Part shown: piece after piece, positions 3,189 through 12,011 of the stretch
How positions within the stretch are numbered: position 1 is the stretch's first letter
Layout: each line of letters opens with the position of its first letter
NCBI RefSeq assembly: GCF_964204865.1
Contig: NC_135252.1
Coordinates: forward strand, 14,322,001 to 14,386,000
Origin: Styela clava
Lineage: Eukaryota
Direction: 5' to 3'
DNA: 64,000 nucleotides
Translations under genes and position numbers: made by a program
The notes under the pieces: model-generated
The model's database searches: none
The model's input: only the letters and a program-made list of their open reading frames with translations
Told to the model about the DNA's origin: nothing

Positions 3189-6100
3189 TTATTCAATACT
3201 TTCTCTATTTTTCAGTTTAACATAAACGCCATCCATAGGTCTCAAAACTAAATTCCCGGTTCTTCGTATATCTTCCAATTTGTCACGAGATTCAACGTCA
3301 AACTTCCTTAAAATGTGTGCAAGTACAACTTTTTCTTCCATTAAAGCAAACTTCTGACCAATGCAATTTCTTGGGCCGGCGGAAAATGGAATATAAGAAT
3401 ACGGATGTCGACTTTCAAACTGCTCGGTCTTAAATCTGGATCAAATCTATTAAAAATATTAATTAGTTACATTTTTAAATTCGTATGTACAAAGCCTAAA
3501 AATAAAATGATATTCTTGTTATTCCCATCGAATAAAAATTTTGTTAATGTGTATTTCCCATTTAATCCAAGCTCAAAATAACAAATTTTAAGATTTGTAT
3601 ATGTAAAATAATCTTTTTTTGTTGTACATTGTTAACAATCAATAACAGTGTAAGATAAAAGGCATGGCTGAAATCTTCAACTTGGAATGCCAACAAAATT
3701 AATTCCGATGCTTCAACTGCTTGACTATCGCGCCAATGTATGATAAATAATATTAATAATTAATCCTCACTTTTCTGGATTGGTCCAACATTCCGGATTG
3801 CTGTTGATCAATTGGATGAAGATCATGCAAAAGGTTCCTTTAGGTACGTCATATCCATCAATCCTGAAATACGTTTTGATTATTGAGTGAAGTCTCCTCT
3901 AATACTTAAAATTATAGATATATATCTCTAGAGCAGTGATCTCCAAAGTTGATTTACTGGGGGCCAAAATTAGAAGCGGGAGGATATTCGCGGGCGGGAG
4001 ATAGGAGCGCCCAAGGGGCGGATACCGGCACCGATACATATAATAATAAGAAACCAGTACAATTGAATTGTTACGAATATACACTGCTTAAACTGTAATA
4101 ATGACGTAACAATAGGCATTATTTAGAACTTAAAAAGGTGAAAACAAAAAGTTGAACTCTTCCACTCAAGTTTGGCGGGCCATATTAAATCGTTACGCGG
4201 GCCGTAATTGGCCGCCTGCCGCGATTTCGGAACCACCGCTCTGGAGAAACTTGTGTTTTTTTGTTTCGAGTTTCCGATAAAAATCAATCTGAAACTGAAC
4301 TTCATGAAATTAAAAGACTAGTCAATATTTTTAAACTTTCAACTGCATCAAATATTGTATTTTATATGTAAAACAATTTTCTATTCTATAATTATGGTTA
4401 GTTAATAAAAGATATTTGTTCGAATCGGCGAATAGTTGAAAAAAAAATTGCACAAACACCGAAACTTTTAGTATATTTAGTTGTGACTTATTTTTTAACG
4501 AATATATTTCATCTGATAAATATTGTAGATTGTTTTAAGTGAAACTGTTTTCTGTTGTCTTGTTGAAACAGAAAATTTCGTGGAATATTTTCTTATAGCC
4601 AAGTGATTTAGATATATTTTTGGTTTGTACTGAGGCTGAATTCATAAAACAGATGAAAAGTTTGACACGTTTTTTAAGCTTTAATTTTATTTGTTCAACG
4701 GTCAGTTAGACTAGTGCGCTAGTTCTACGCGCTGTTGGGCATTACTCTAAATTACTTGTCATATATATGATGAATAACATTTTCATGATATTTTCAATAT
4801 CGACATTCATTGTGATACTTACTTGCAATCATGAGCTGTATTTCTACTGACTATTGGGACAGGTGGAAGGAATCGATGAGATTCTTTGATGACCATTTCT
4901 AGATATTGAAGTTTCCGAAGATCTTCAAATGTTATTTTGCGATCAACATCGTCGACAAAAATATTGTCCAATTCCTCTTGAATTCGACGTTGAACATCGG
5001 GATAAGTACCTAATTAATTTAATTTATAAACTACAAATAAAGCATTTCTATTGAAAATTACGAACAGATACGCGTTGTAACTACATATCATTATTATTAT
5101 AATATTATCAATACATTACATATTTCTAAGACGTTTAAAATATAAAAAAAGTATGTTTTAGTATAGCCTACTTTGCACATTCGGAAAATATTATGTTACC
5201 AATAAGATAAAGAGTCCATGTCATTCCTGCAGACGACGTGTCATGACCTATAAATAATGAGAACAAAAATGTGTTTCAAATAAAAAAGAATTTGTATTTT
5301 GTCATATTTCAAATTTTTTTATTAAATAGTTGTATTACGAATGAGAACAATTTTACGAAAAGAAAAGACACGGCAACAAACATGTTTTGTGGGAATGTTA
5401 AATTTGAGGGGTGATCAAGTTAATTTATGATCGGCCGAGTTAATTACATTATATCGCAGCGTAAAACAAGAGGTGCTCAAAAATAGGAACACGATGGCCA
5501 AAACGAAGTAGCATCAAATATTTTACAGTGCCGGTAAGTAGTAGTAGGGTAGTTGAACTATGTATGTCTGAAGAAGTCTGACCTTGGTCAGACGAAACGG
5601 TACAGAAATATATTTGTGTTAGTGTGCAGCAAGACTCTTGAATCACTTAGACTAGTACCGGTAGTCCTCTTTATCAATAAAATTCTGACTTTGCTGACCA
5701 AGAGATCGATGAAATGTTGCCGCAGAACCGCCACAAGACGCGATTTTTATTTTGATGAGGTCATCACAAAACACTTCAATATAAAAAAAAACTTCCACGG
5801 AGCTCACAAAAAAATGAAGGTAATATCCTTCTATAGAGACAACAATAATGTTCAGCCTATAAAAATTTCAAAGCGATTGGCTCAGTAGTTAAAAGAGATC
5901 TTTATCCTAAAAAACAAGAATACGAAGAACATAAACAAATCAACGAAACGATCAATAGTGTCCAATAATTGCAAGCTTTGTTACCTCCAAACATGAATGT
6001 ATCAACTTCCTCTCGAATGTCTTCTATAGAAAGGTGTTTTCCTCCTTCTGAAACTTTTATTAACAGATCTAAGAATGCATGACGTCTATGGTTCCAAGTT

Positions 6101-9100
6101 TCGTCTTCTTTTTTGAATTTCGACATACGATCTCTGATAACTGATTTTGTGAATGTGTGAATAACGTTCAGCACCTTCCTATATTCTTTTCCCATTTTTG
6201 TTAAATTATAAGTTACATCGGGCCACATCCATGGATATTTAAATCGTTTCATTAGCAAATGAGTGATTCTGATTTAAAAATAAAAAAAATTTCAACTGTT
6301 TATCCATGTACATGAAGCACTCACAATTTAAAGCAATTCCTACACTGATTGTTTAAATATGCATGTAACTGCTTTTCGTGTTGTAGTTGAACTATGTATG
6401 TCTGAAGAAGTCTGACCTTGGTCAGACGAAACGTTACATAAAAATATATTTGTGTTAGTGTGCAGCAAGACTCTTGAATCACTTATAATTCGTATGTTTG
6501 TTTTTGTTTAGACACGATTGAGATGCATAGATAAGATACAGAATAAAATTGCAAGACACGGGAAAGATTTGATATAAAATTTGATATCGATTATAATCGA
6601 TAATTGATAATTATCAATTGAATCTATTAAATTTGAGTTGGGTTGCGCGAGACTAACTTCCTATCTTTTCTCTATGCCTTTATGCTAGTGGATCCGTATG
6701 CGTATACTGCAAGGAAGTCTGACTCTAGTCGGACGAAACGTTACAGAAATACATTTGTGTTAGTGTGCAGCTGGACTCTTTAACACTTTCGATGCCAAGA
6801 TCAGTTTTTTCAATTTTACCGTTCCGTGCCAAGGTGAAAACGAGAGAGTTCTCTCCTATTCATTCTCTCTCGTATTTAGTTTTTGATTCATCGGGAAAGG
6901 GGCGAACCCAGCGGTGTCATCAGTTATCGTTCACTCCGACACTTCAGTCGTAGGTGAAAGAACTCACCTACACACGCGTATCTTGTCGGAATTGCTCTCT
7001 CATGCTATTATAACATAAGTTGATGATAACTTGTCTTGATCTCTCATTGCGATAAAGATTCAATTCGAACATTTTATTCAGCAATCAGAATCATTTTATT
7101 ATACGAAAATATCAAATTTGAACAAAAAAAACAAAATCGTTTACTAGCATAAAAATATATCCTTCATTCGCTATATATTCCAATAACATTAATAATGGCC
7201 AATTATTGTCACTCACAAGGATAACATATTGCAAAATAAACAAAGTAGTCACATTGCATATTCATACAACTGTAACACATATGTATCTCTATGACCTCGT
7301 CACCATTACAATACGTCGAAAGTATTGAAATCGGCCTCTTATCTTGCCATAGTAGTGCGAGTAATTGTCCTTTTCGTAGTGAGATGATTTCCCCTTTCTT
7401 TAGTTTTGTTTTTATTTCTGCTGGAAGTCCCTTCCGGTTTGCCATGACTGTTCCCGTTATCGATGTTTTCCTTCGCTGCAATTCCTCGGCTAATGCGACA
7501 GAGTTATAGAGTCTAAATTAAAAATGAATATTATTAAAAATTGGTTGTGATAAAACAGTTTATGCAATTGATTGATATATCCGACAATGATTCGTTATCT
7601 AAAATAGAACGCAGTATGGCGCCGAGACGTAAATTATCTAATTTGTCTTATCAATACCGAATAATCAACATACCTATCAACAAATACGTGATATCCTCTA
7701 TCCAGATGACTTTCCATTAGTTGCAAAACTAAATTCGAAGTTTTTGTGACGCCGGGTGGAAGTTGTTCCAAGTTTGGATTACCATAATCTATTTTTACAT
7801 TGAAAATGTATCCAGTTGTTGAATCACTCGCACTACTATGGCAAGATAAGAGGCCGATTTCAATACTTTCGACGTATTGTAATGGTGACGAGGTCATAGA
7901 GATACATATGTGTTACAGTTGTATGAATATGCAATGTGACTACTTTGTTTATTTTGCAATATGTTATCCTTGTGAGTGACAATAATTGGCCATTATTAAT
8001 GTTATTGGAATATATAGCGAATGGAGGATATATTTTTATGCTAGTAAACGATTTTGTTTTCTTTGCTCGAATTTGATATTTTCGTATAATAAAATGATTC
8101 TGATTGCTGAATAACATGTTCGAATTGAATCTTTATCGCAATGAGAGATCAAGACAAGTTATCTCCAACTTATGTTATAATAGCATGAGAGAGCAATTCC
8201 GACAAGATACGCATGTGTAGGTGAGTTCTTTCACCTACGACTGATGTGTCGGATAATACCGAAACATGCGTAATACATTTCAGGTGCGTTTGTATCTTAG
8301 TATTGCTCCTGAGTTTTCGTCGGGCGCTTCTATATTTGGTGGGTTCAGTCAGTAAACGATGAAATTCGAAGTCTTTACTTGCCTCGGCAAACATTTCATT
8401 CAATCTGGTATTTATAGCGAGCAAATACTTATTTGTGTGGATATTTGAACTAATATTGGCGTGCAAATGAAGTATTTCCAAATGCAATTTCAATATTCAT
8501 TATACGCATCCGGTGTCTCTAAGTTGACATAATAAAAAGGTTTAAAGCTTCATCGAAATTCGTCAGTTGATCTGTCAAGAACACGATTTTCCGAAATTGT
8601 CATCTCACGCAATTTGCTACGCAAGTCGTCTCGACTGCACGTAGTCCCGTCTTCGTGGCGCCAGACACGTGATCGCTATTGCGTAGCTACGTAATCAGTA
8701 CGCCATGGCTGCTTATTGAACTTGTTCATCCGACACAAAGTCGTAGGATTGCATATTTTGCTATAATTATGGTTATACAATAGCTACGGAAGTAATTCAA
8801 TATGAGCTGAAAGCATACGAGGGGCTCTGTGTTATTGGTAATATATTTCCCGCTAAATTACCATATCTCGGATCATATCTCACTGACAAGTAGAAAAATA
8901 TATGTTCCGAATAATATCAATTTCTCACTTTATTATTTCAAAATGTAACATTTCACCTCTCAGGACGATAAAATTTGCTTTCGTTGCAGATGTCCGTCAA
9001 TCCGTTACCCAAAAATGATAAAAAATTAAAAAAACGTTCAAAAATACCAACATTTTGAATCATTTCATCGTCCTGCCAATAAGACGACGATCATGCATAT

Positions 9101-12011
9101 AAAAATATTCGAATTATTTCCCGGTTTAGTAATGTTTTTCTACATCTTCGTAACATGATTGATAATATTATCATCTCTCCTCACACCTTTCAATCATTTC
9201 ACCGTAAAAAGTTGAAACCGTGTGTTGGCGTCAGTCGGTCTCGTACAAATTTTTGATGATAATTTGCGGCTAATATGTACCTCGGCCATGCTAAATAAGT
9301 TGATAATTTACTTCATGGCAGACCCTCCTTCCATCTTGGTATTTCTTGAATGACGCGATTGGCTGACGACGTCATTCTTTCTCCCCAACTTGACAACAAG
9401 AGAGAGAGAGAGAGAGAAGAAAAAATACGGCAAATACCTGAACTCGACCTTCTTCTATCTATTAAACTTTTTCCTTTTCGAATGACGTATATATACGTCA
9501 TTTTGCATTGATGGCACGGAACGGTTGGCGCCAAATGACGTATATATACGTTCTTGGCATCGAAAGTGTTAATTGAATAGAATAGTCATGTTTATTCCAG
9601 CTACAGTATCCTTGCAGTATACGCATACGGATCCACTAGCATAAAGGCATAGAGAAAAGATAGGAAGTTAGTCTCGCGCAACCCAACTCAAATTTATGTT
9701 ATTGTATTCGTGGGACTTCTGTATCCATAATGGATCCTTCTAACTCTGGACTCGACAACAATTGCAAGAAAGAAATATACAAATACCACAAGAAAGAATT
9801 CGATATTTCAAATTCATTTAGCAAATTTATTTCTTGCCATTGTTGTAAACTGCTTGTCTGAGGAAGTCTGACTCTGGTCGGACGAAACGTTACAGAAATA
9901 CATTTGTGTTAGTGTGCAGCTGGACTCTTTAATTGAATAGAATAGTCATGTTTATTCCAGCTACAGTATCCTTGCAGTATACGCATACGGATCCACTAGC
10001 ATAAAGGCATAGAGAAAAGATAGGAAGTTAGTCTCGCGCAACCCAACTCAAATTTATGTTATTGTATTCGTGGGACTTCTGTATCCATAATGGATCCTTC
10101 TAACTCTGGACTCGACAACAATTGCAAGAAAGAAATATACAAATACCACAAGAAAGAATTCGATATTTCAAATTCATTTAGCAAATTTATTTCTTGCCAT
10201 TGTTGTAAACTGCTTGTCTGAGGAAGTCTGACTCTGGTCGGACGAAACGTTACAGAAATACATTTGTGTTAGTGTGCAGCTGGACTCTTTAATTGAATAG
10301 AATAGTCATGTTTATTCCAGCTACAGTATCCTTGCAGTATACGCATACGGATCCACTAGCATAAAGGCATAGAGAAAAGATAGGAAGTTAGTCTCGCGCA
10401 ACCCAACTCAAATTTATGTTATTGTATTCGTGGGACTTCTGTATCCATAATGGATCCTTCTAACTCTGGACTCGACAACAATTGCAAGAAAGAAATATAC
10501 AAATACCACAAGAAAGAATTCGATATTTCAAATTCATTTAGCAAATTTATTTCTTGCCATTGTTGTAAACTGCTTGTCTGAGGAAGTCTGACTCTGGTCG
10601 GACGAAACGTTACAGAAATACATTTGTGTTAGTGTGCAGCTGGACTCTTTAATTGAATAGATGAATCTATTAACCTGTGAATTGACGTAACATATTCTGA
10701 TCCCTCGTCAACTTGAGCATTTACATTTTCTCCCATTGCTGTTTCACATATGATGTCCAAAGCACATAGACCAACATGTTCCAATAGTTCAAAATATTTG
10801 TCCGAATTTGCAAGTTTTTGTAATCTTTCCGTGAATATCTCGCACTTATCATTCATACTTGGCAAAAAATCTTTCAGTATACTAAAAAAAAGCCATATAG
10901 GTAAAGACAGTTCTGAAATTTGATGGCCAGATTTTCTAGTTGATTGACAAGTATATAATGCCCATTCAGTTTGTTGGTAAGACTAAATTTAAATCAAAAT
11001 GTTATTAAGATTATCTGATTGCTTCTTTCTGATACCCAAATATCAATCTTTGTGAAAGAATTATAAAATCAAACTACTGGTAATATTTTTGAAGGAATCA
11101 ATTGCTTTTAATTCTGTAGACATTTATCTGCTGTTATATGCACTTATTAAGATTTTTGTAATTTGATCAACATTTTCCAACGCGACACTGGACAAATTCA
11201 GCGAAATTTATTCTATAGACTACATCTCTAATGGCAAAATTTCAAAAATTATCTGATTGCTTCTTTCTGATACCCAAATATCAATCTTTGTGAAAGAATT
11301 ATAAAATAAAACTACTGGTAATATTTTTGAAGGAATCAATTGCTTTTTATTCTGTAGACATTTATCTGCTGTTATATGCACTTATTAAGATTTTTGTAAT
11401 TTGATCAACATTCTCCAACGCGACACTGGACAAATTCAGCGAAATTTATTCTATAGACTACATCTCTAATGGCAAAATTTCAGGATTGAATTACTTGACA
11501 TTGTTTTATTCCTATAATATTTGATTATATCATAATATTATATATAGCTTGGAAAGTAAACTCAATACTTGAAGTGGAACGCAGGTGTAAGTAATTTTCT
11601 TCTAGATTTCCATTTTTCGCCTGTTGCTGTTAATAATCCAGTTCCAAGCCAGTCATGGAAAAACTTGTAGAAATACGATTTGTCCAAGTGTTCAGAACTT
11701 TTTAAAATCTCTTCTGCTGCTTTTGGACCAGTGATAAACAGAACAGGCATTGGCCCCCACCATATGCATCCTACATTGCTTTTGCAGGGTACTATGTAAT
11801 CATTGATTATCTTTATTCTGCTTGCGTATATATTGTCAGGGTAGAAATTCAAAAGCTTGATGTGTCCGACAGGTGGATACGATGTGGGTGGACCAGGAAT
11901 CTTTGAGTAAATTTTCCATTTTGTTACGAAGTTTTTGAAGAATGAAAAAGTTTTTATTATTAGCCAAGCCAGCACAACCGTAAACACTATTGCAGAAATG
12001 CTAAATGCCAT
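3189..12011 (-). CDS. Cytochrome P450, CYP4 clan (CYP4V-like), 7 coding exons; apparent frameshift in the last exon (null allele, pseudogene or assembly error)
   Basis: Coding exons (minus): 12011-11569, 10881-10675, 6268-5985, 5247-5200, 5009-4823, 3863-3771, 3446-3189, all GT-AG with matching phases. Motifs: N-terminal TM plus PGPP hinge, WLGTGLL..WKSRRKLLTPAFHF, LDIICETAMG, EEVDTFMFGGHDTS (I-helix), KESHR (ExxR), PFSAGPRNCIGQKFA (heme Cys). The summed CDS is 1520 nt, not a multiple of 3; adding 4 nt gives 507 aa. Confidence 0.93.
3934..4238. mobile_element. hAT-type MITE in CYP intron 5
   Basis: Ends cagtgatctccaaa...ttcggaaccaccg, flanked by a near-identical 8-bp duplication ctctagag/ctctggag. 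Confidence 0.65.
5550..5648 (+). ncRNA. Solo/older hammerhead-ribozyme-bearing repeat (copy A, CYP intron 3)
   Basis: tgtatgt-CTGAAGA-a-GTCTGAC-cttg-GTCAGAC-GAAAC-ggt-aca, followed by the same tail (atttgtgttagtgtgcagc) as the 360-bp units. Confidence 0.65.
6385..6484 (+). ncRNA. Solo/older hammerhead-ribozyme-bearing repeat (copy B, CYP intron 2)
   Basis: tatgt-CTGAAGA-a-GTCTGAC-cttg-GTCAGAC-GAAACGTT-acata. Helix I is tatgt/acata and helix II is 7 bp. Confidence 0.72.
6935..8253. repeat. 428-bp inverted repeat (arms 6935-7362 and 7826-8253) inside the piggyBac
   Basis: The arms are near-perfect reverse complements, for example ttgccatagtagtgcgagt vs actcgcactactatggcaa. This explains the mirrored ORFs 7291..7509(+) and 7634..7897(-). 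Confidence 0.93.
7280..7825 (-). pseudogene. piggyBac (DDE_Tnp_1_7 / PGBD-like) transposase fragment, two exons
   Basis: DSTTGYIFNVKIDYG..TSNLVLQLMESHLDRGYHVFVDR | intron 7673-7513 | LYNSVALAEELQRRKTSITGTVMANRKGLP..LKKGE..LLALLWQDKRPISILST matches the piggyBac DNxxxS, GT.R.NR and W.D.K/R.V.LST motifs. Confidence 0.88.
9854..9895 (+). ncRNA. Minimal type I hammerhead ribozyme motif (unit 1)
   Basis: ttgt-CTGAGGA-a-GTCTGAC-tctg-GTCGGAC-GAAACGTT-acag: CUGANGA and GAAA core, 7-bp helix II with one U-G pair, palindromic AACGTT helix III. Confidence 0.75.
10214..10255 (+). ncRNA. Minimal type I hammerhead ribozyme motif (unit 2)
   Basis: Same sequence as the unit 1 motif, 360 bp downstream. Confidence 0.75.
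10574..10615 (+). ncRNA. Minimal type I hammerhead ribozyme motif (unit 3)
   Basis: Same sequence as the unit 1 motif, 720 bp downstream. Confidence 0.75.
11010..11482. repeat. Tandem duplication, 2 x ~238 bp, in CYP intron 1
   Basis: attatctgattgcttctttctgatacccaaatatc...ggcaaaatttca is repeated at ~11010 and ~11248. Confidence 0.93.

Follow-up and report, generated by a model that had tools for sequence, protein, structure and literature searches.

Among the features described for insertions of Penelope-like elements (PLEs) are truncation at the 5' end, partial tandems, a neighbouring copy that is inverted and 5'-truncated, and a tail often found at one end only; multi-copy head-to-tail insertions have been reported for non-autonomous PLEs (PMC8557442). 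A PLE protein, purified and assayed in vitro, cut both strands of the target and extended them, and it initiated reverse transcription at two sites within the RNA that are one tail length apart (PMC11167929). Animal retrozymes lacking long terminal repeats (non-LTR retrozymes) are tandem repeats of type I hammerheads that give rise to circular RNAs (circRNAs) and are probably mobilised by PLEs (PMC7229834); a 2026 preprint (Li, Clavereau and Pollet) claims from phylogeny that retrozymes derive from PLE pseudo-LTRs with local amplification, and reports that they are depleted in introns. Here we analysed a hammerhead-bearing array of 360-nt units inserted in an intron of a cytochrome P450 (CYP) gene of Styela clava, within a window of 64,000 nucleotides (assembly GCF_964204865.1, contig NC_135252.1, positions 14,322,001 to 14,386,000, forward strand; positions below are those of the window).

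The inserted block spans 6619-10673, with 4,031 nt between the two copies of its target-site duplication (TSD), of which only 1,246 nt are PLE-derived, the remainder being a DNA transposon nested later. The best overall explanation, which we consider very probable, is that the block arose by one integration carried out by the reverse transcriptase and GIY-YIG endonuclease of an active PLE. Taken by itself, a single integration by PLE machinery is the part held with the highest confidence, and the simultaneous formation of three or more units is only marginally favoured. The features that carry this reading are the following (ORF, open reading frame):

6619-6630, no strand: left TSD copy, 12 bp (TGAATCTATTAA); its last 3 nt (TAA) also belong to the inverted arm.
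6628-6715, minus strand: inverted arm, fully complementary (100%) to unit 41-128; outwards it stops at unit 128, the 'long' PLE 3' end, which bears the tail.
6712-6783, plus strand: start of the direct arm, unit 293-360 plus TTAA (unit 1-4).
9569-10661, plus strand: main part of the direct arm, with three full 360-nt units followed by unit 1-13, identical throughout (100%).
9730-9801, plus strand: codons 1-24 of the PLE ORF (MDPSNSGLDNNCKKEIYKYHKKEF), up to the closure junction C233/G234 (9801/9802); again at +360 and +720.
9858-9893, plus strand: predicted minimal type I hammerhead found by pattern search, with CUGAGGA, a bulged A, a 7-bp helix II, GAAA, CG and UU.
10662-10673, no strand: right TSD copy, 12 bp (TGAATCTATTAA), equal to intron +2 to +13 on the minus strand.
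10675-10865, minus strand: CYP exon 2, ending at 10675 with its GT donor at 10674-10673; the paralog exon is 97% identical, and 10865 is an approximate 5' limit.

A preliminary description of this stretch had placed a 12-bp TSD around the block, and both copies proved exact, TGAATCTATTAA occurring twice in the window. The chance of such a flank, computed from base composition, was 2.4e-7 per offset, and a 12-mer flank was found in 32 of 200,000 random position pairs lying 4031 nt apart within the window. The inverted 5' end, the AGGA joint and the TAA overlap were likewise recovered: 6628-6715 corresponds to unit 41-128 (numbered 39-125 in that description, whose origin lay 2 nt further on) and joins unit 293, with AGGA (6712-6715) common to the inverted and direct arms and TAA (6628-6630) common to the inverted arm and the left TSD. 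Tandem Repeats Finder reported the 360-nt unit in 3.0 copies at 9569-10661 with 100% identity, while the first part of the direct arm (6712-6783) carries a single mismatch, at position 6727 (A vs G in the other units), and a hammerhead truncated by loss of its core CTG. On the right, the direct arm runs as far as unit 13, which is the 'short' one of the canonical PLE 3' ends, and the end of the block reads ...TTAATTGAATAGA/TGAATC without an A-tract; no poly(A) or A-rich 3' end was found on the block, and no N runs interrupt the block region.

The host gene lies on the minus strand and was recognised by Pfam p450 matches to its exon 1 and exon 3 ORFs, searched separately. As previously claimed, the right TSD overlaps the GT donor of exon 2 (10674-10673); the acceptor AG is at 6270-6269, so that the intron measures 4,406 nt with the insertion and 363 nt without it, close to the 360 bp estimated before. 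Moreover, a 1,044-nt contig of the X5 run aligned to 10675-10881 and departs from the window exactly at 10675, as expected for spliced mRNA. A composite insertion of ~4 kb has been accommodated 13 nt from the splice donor of a CYP4-like gene, with the first 13 intron bases unaltered.

About 10 kb upstream, at C3:14318264-14318601, stands the next CYP paralog. Its identity is 81% to the left flank and 97% on the side of exon 2, where the alignment opens exactly at the first base of the right 12-mer. The paralog reads ttatcaatTGAATTTATTAAcctgtg / ...ttatcaatTGAATTTATTAAcctgtgtattgacg..., one 12-mer (with one mismatch) joining both flanks, so that the 12-mer was single before the insertion, and the site is a paralogous empty site. 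The empty-site check that had been advised was thereby answered in this paralog, and the contrary pattern, two 12-mers persisting in a site that lacks the array, was not found there.

We compared the unit with its own 377-Mb assembly, in which about 90 matches were scored out of 2,291 candidates; no other complete unit was among them, the matches spanning unit 1-233, 230-360, or 1 to about 130. At C18:15.23 Mb, unit pieces flank an ORF of 938 aa beginning MDPSNSGLDNNCKKEIYKYHKKEF, which bears RVT_1 (1.4e-9) and GIY-YIG (4e-5) domains and whose nearest named protein is 99% identical, from Styela clava. This element (L032) is an autonomous PLE, with a reverse transcriptase and a GIY-YIG endonuclease. 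Rotated so that it begins at 234, the unit matches the contiguous stretch L032:695-1054 over all 360 nt without a difference (100%). The stretch runs from the last 127 nt of the 3' untranslated region (3'UTR), where the hammerhead lies, through the pseudo-LTR to codon 24 of the ORF. The unit is this stretch of PLE closed on itself at C233/G234, and the 360-nt sequence is a piece of a PLE and not an independent ribozyme element. The array is very young, since its three units match each other and the C18 copy perfectly, the only mismatch being that at 6727.

The two ends of the block can be placed within the general architecture of this PLE family, which we surveyed in a sample of best-scoring loci, not a census (L011, L013, L016, L021, L024, L027, L029, L030, L070, L074, L079, L081, L082, also fetched as L083-L085, L086, L087 and the C18 complex L031/L032, in addition to window 6628-10661). 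PLE 3' ends in this genome, in full-length and truncated copies, fall at unit 10-17 or at unit 126-134. In 16/16 other independent head-to-head complexes one arm ends at ~10-17 and the other at ~126-134, never two alike; the outer end type of the inverted arm (unit 128) thus recurs in all 16, and the window block, ending at unit 13 and unit 128, adds a 17th. Most of the 16 are flanked by an AT-rich TSD of 8-15 bp (for example TAAAATGTTAGT, TATGCAAATTTAA, TATTGTAACTGT, CTATAATTTATT and TGTAGACAGACA); no clear TSD was found at L074, and the candidate at L030 is doubtful. With its ends at 128 and 13 and its 12-bp duplication, the block therefore follows the common PLE pattern. The survey of other copies that had been proposed beforehand yielded the expected TSDs, inverted arms and variable inner ends, while the 3' ends cluster at two start sites. 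Fixed ends with terminal inverted repeats (TIRs), named in advance as a contrary outcome, were not observed, since the inner ends are variable and the two termini of the block do not form an inverted repeat; a TIR transposon comprising the whole block was rejected on the latter ground. In published in vitro work the start site was alike on both strands; in the complexes of this genome the two starts seem to go together, one to each strand or each template.

One complex bears directly on copy number. At C18:15230552-15239025 (L031/L032), an 8.5-kb PLE complex lies inside a single 13-bp TSD (TAAAATGCAAAGA). In it, a full-length copy is accompanied by a copy with an internal deletion, a partial pseudo-LTR and a truncated copy in inverse orientation, and more than two copies stand in tandem. 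Its inverted arm and its first direct copy both break at ORF position 1530 (period coordinates), the direct arm joining unit 192 to ORF position 1530, and this common break suggests a shared truncated RNA 5' end. Since this multi-copy complex is enclosed by one TSD, a multi-copy insertion made in a single event is plausible for the window block as well.

The same inner junction was observed at L070/L089 (C18:17564078), L081/L088 (C5:7288467), L090 (C2:21016875) and L091 (C3:18038041). The four insertions are independent of each other, belong to two PLE families and differ in their TSDs, yet in all of them the direct arm begins exactly at the base after the predicted ribozyme cleavage (GAAACGUU/A, unit 324), as though template RNA cleaved by the ribozyme had left its footprint in the genome. 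At L016, L021, L082, L025, L026, L008 and L030, the inner boundary falls at unit 270-272. Unit 270/271 lies 20 nt upstream of the hammerhead core, and L021 shows repeated abortive restarts at this base with short filler; the position probably corresponds to the transcription start in the pseudo-LTR, with template jumping at the RNA 5' end.

The hammerhead of the array is predicted to be a minimal ribozyme of the PLE type. It recurs at 10218-10253 and 10578-10613, its strand is antisense to the CYP gene, and cleavage is predicted at 9891/9892 (unit 323/324). The pattern CTGANGA...GAAACGTTAC gave 4 matches vs 0 expected, and the motif also has the 4-bp helix I and the palindromic 15.2-16.2 pair, features published for the minimal PLE hammerheads (min-HHR; PMC4209133). 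Folding of one unit gave a weak signal (z = -1.8), which we did not use as evidence.

The following course of events would account for the block. An AT-rich target 13 nt into the intron after CYP exon 2 would receive one nick on each strand, with 12 bp between them, and cDNA synthesis on PLE RNA would be primed from the two 3'-OH ends; it is the inverted arm and the junction microhomologies that argue for target-primed reverse transcription from both nicked strands, a use of the two nicks that has its analogue in the published in vitro work. On one strand, synthesis would start at the usual internal site near unit 13 and generate the direct arm (293-360, three full units and 1-13), while on the other it would start at the second usual site near unit 128, aided by the TAA microhomology, and generate the 88-nt inverted arm running from 128 to 41. 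The two cDNA ends would then be joined at the AGGA microhomology, and repair would leave the 12-bp duplication. The template would be the 360-nt PLE tandem-junction region (3'UTR with the hammerhead, pseudo-LTR and 24 codons) closed at 233/234, and an active piggyBac element would afterwards have entered the first TTAA of the array.

How three units came to stand in line may be explained in several ways. The preliminary description held that more than three units were integrated at once. The C18 complex provides an analogue within one TSD; growth by local unequal crossover after the insertion, which that description had set aside, keeps a real, if smaller, share. If the units were made at once, the likeliest source would be a single 360-nt RNA fragment copied through repeated end-to-end template jumps, or the copying of a circle closed by means other than the ribozyme, or else the transcript of a donor missing from this haploid assembly; taken jointly, we give these routes a narrow preference. 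In the competing route, which we judge less probable and on balance unlikely, one non-homologous jump (234 to 233) would have produced a PLE insertion of about 1.2 units, in the order inverted arm, 293-360, 1-360 and 1-13; the repeats would later have undergone unequal sister-chromatid exchange, or slipped during replication, and so reached 3.2 units. Such growth would agree with the absence of a documented multimeric or circular template for a junction found at this locus only, with the one-off internal jumps that do occur in this PLE family (unit 192 to ORF 1530 in the C18 complex), with a 238-bp x2 tandem duplication in the neighbouring intron, and with the local amplification that the 2026 preprint proposes as the source of retrozyme arrays. 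However, it would need two further rearrangements while the three units stayed 100% identical, and PLE machinery demonstrably makes head-to-tail multi-copy insertions within one TSD (C18 complex; PMC8557442).

Several observations weigh against the reading of one integration by PLE machinery or against parts of it. A 36-mer across 233/234, searched with <=3 mismatches, has 3 occurrences in the 377-Mb assembly, all within this array, and because the junction is confined in this way neither a donor locus nor a 360-nt family is documented; a one-step concatemer is harder to explain when no junction-bearing template is documented. The sampled loci, too, contained no further short array derived from a PLE. 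The copy number of the array, a 100% identical 360-bp repeat, is that of the assembly. Among the short contigs of four runs (X5, X6, X7 and X18), which are mostly repeat copies, none bridges either block junction or an empty allele, and an orthologous allele, empty or filled, was not seen in them. Rfam returned no hammerhead at gathering thresholds over the whole window, nor at E up to 10 over 6300-10750, which we attribute to the motif being of the minimal PLE type that its models miss. Lastly, this PLE family has a tail of ~115 nt, whereas 30-40 nt have been reported in other PLEs.

The preliminary description had gone further and expected rolling-circle reverse transcription of a 360-nt circle; in this version, an established 360-nt retrozyme would supply the hammerhead-processed circular RNA. 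Identical tandem units with a hammerhead in each would be expected from such a source, as would the kinship with animal retrozymes, whose type I hammerhead repeats stand in tandem, are expressed as circRNAs and probably owe their mobility to PLEs (PMC7229834). The closure point argues against this explanation. The junction 233/234 lies 90 nt from the predicted cleavage site 323/324, so that hammerhead cleavage and ligation could not create the circle from the parent PLE, and the junction 36-mer, confined to this array, leaves the assembly without a donor or family. Splicing or back-splicing was rejected as the source of 233/234, there being no GT or AG at the boundaries, and a recurrent RNA 5' end at unit 234 was rejected because no other surveyed insertion has that boundary. 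No circRNA was found for the unit in the runs, which are at contig level only and whose contigs cannot show circularity, and no listed contig of X5, X6, X7 or X18 crosses the unit junction 9801/9802. A hammerhead-made 360-nt circle is therefore unsupported, the closure being neither a ribozyme cleavage site nor accompanied by splice signals and unique to the locus, and we consider this explanation improbable.

Twin priming had been read from the TSD, the 5' inversion and the microhomology, which are also the established signature of L1 twin priming, reportedly described by Ostertag and Kazazian in 2001; in such a case a long interspersed nuclear element (LINE) would have mobilised the RNA in trans with its L1-like endonuclease and reverse transcriptase. 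The target-primed character of the insertion stands, but it is of the PLE type and not of the LINE type: the 3' end has no poly(A) or A-rich stretch, both outer ends are the two PLE-specific internal start sites of all sampled PLE complexes, and the inserted sequence is itself a PLE. Because the hallmarks of the block are the norm in PLE complexes and in the literature on them, they identify PLE-type integration, and a LINE origin is very improbable. Equally improbable is a separate origin of the inverted arm and of the array, by two independent insertions, a DNA-level rearrangement or a TIR transposon. In its favour are the great abundance of PLE fragments and the second hammerhead element 134 bp away in the same intron, but a single 12-bp TSD encloses both arms, the block termini are not mutual inverted repeats, and the two-arm layout recurs in 16 other complexes, mostly in a single TSD.

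The preliminary description had treated the whole block as a ribozyme array, which is correct for the 360-nt units and the two arms and incorrect for 2,785 nt of the block:

6784-9568, no strand: piggyBac-family DNA transposon, nested later (2,785 nt), not ribozyme array.

Its 17-bp TIRs (CACTTTCGATGCCAAGA) lie at 6784-6800 and 9552-9568, with the TTAA duplication at 6780-6783 and 9569-9572, and it holds transposase remnants (DDE_Tnp_1_7) and an internal 432-nt inverted duplication (6935-7366 / 7822-8253). Its relatives number at least 40 genomic copies with 99-100% identical ends, and the family has therefore been active very recently. The piggyBac element inserted later, and recently, into the first TTAA of the array. 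Contigs from X6, X7 and X18, runs labelled as three other organisms, closely match the element 6784-9568.

A further hammerhead sequence lies in the same intron, outside the insertion:

6335-6485, plus strand: older separate hammerhead element of 151 bp, from a second PLE-related family.

It is not in the intron of the CYP paralog, and it falls within the 363-bp ancestral intron, 134 bp from the block. Short hammerhead elements of this second family were seen in the window at 6335-6485 and at about 5553-5650. The family is ~64% identical to the array over the 72-nt ribozyme region and has at least 1,777 candidate copies with fixed ~151-bp boundaries. Elsewhere around the host gene, CYP paralogs stand in tandem just upstream of the window, including a third copy at C3:14309225-14309428 (79% identical), and constitute a local CYP4-like gene cluster; at 11010-11482, upstream of CYP exon 2 and apparently in the preceding intron, there is a 238-bp x2.0 tandem duplication with 98% identity.

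Current proposals on how animal hammerhead retrozyme arrays originate from PLEs rest on phylogeny and co-occurrence. At this locus the identity of parent and array, the intact boundaries, the empty paralogous site and the visible closure allow the first step to be examined at single-nucleotide resolution. We tentatively propose, as a possibility that falls short of an even chance, that the locus records the birth of a retrozyme, in which a donorless 360-nt PLE RNA fragment became a tandem array in one integration, either by processive end-to-end template jumping or by the copying of a circle, closed without the ribozyme, by PLE reverse transcriptase. As each unit keeps the transcription start of the pseudo-LTR, the hammerhead and both reverse-transcription start sites, the array could found a new non-autonomous family. 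Moreover, the regularity of the PLE insertions, always with one short and one long end, constrains the poorly understood mechanism of PLE integration, as do the many 5' ends at the likely transcription start and those, fewer in number, at the predicted ribozyme cleavage site.

Compared with L1 twin priming, the block is alike in that both nicked strands would prime and in that inverted and direct segments are joined at a microhomology within a TSD. It differs in having no poly(A) and in the enzyme family involved, and the poly(A) 3' end at a TTTT/A-like nick that a LINE ORF2 protein makes in L1-type insertions is absent from the block. Moreover, L1 primes at the 3' end and at a random internal site, whereas here both priming sites are fixed internal RNA positions, and inversion, occasional in L1, is the common outcome in this PLE family.

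The likeness is much closer to canonical endonuclease-bearing (EN+) PLEs of the Penelope/Poseidon/Neptune type, which share the minimal type I hammerhead in the pseudo-LTR, tandem copies, partial or multiple, beside an inverted and 5'-truncated one, the tail at one end only, two internal reverse-transcription start sites and an AT-rich TSD of variable length (12 bp here). All five marks of an EN+ PLE derivative are present in the block: parentage, head-to-tail and inverted copies, a one-end tail, the hammerhead and the variable AT-rich TSD. Unlike these elements, the insert is a 360-nt mini-version (UTRs and 24 codons) and not a coding copy, and its tail is about 115 nt, theirs being 30-40 nt. 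In the Anolis PLE studied in vitro, the start sites lie 111-118 nt inside the ORF, whereas here they lie upstream of it.

With metazoan non-LTR retrozymes (Cervera and de la Pena 2020; 2026 preprint) the array shares tandem units of ~170-400 bp with a type I hammerhead, the lack of an LTR, a primer-binding site (PBS) and a polypurine tract (PPT), a TSD longer than 4 bp, and an origin from PLE terminal sequence with presumable mobilisation by PLE protein. It differs from them in that its unit occurs at one locus only and not as a dispersed family, is 100% identical to its parent PLE and includes the start of the PLE ORF, and in that the array is intronic. Taken together, the array derives from a PLE, is nascent and confined to one locus, and resembles a metazoan non-LTR retrozyme in appearance.

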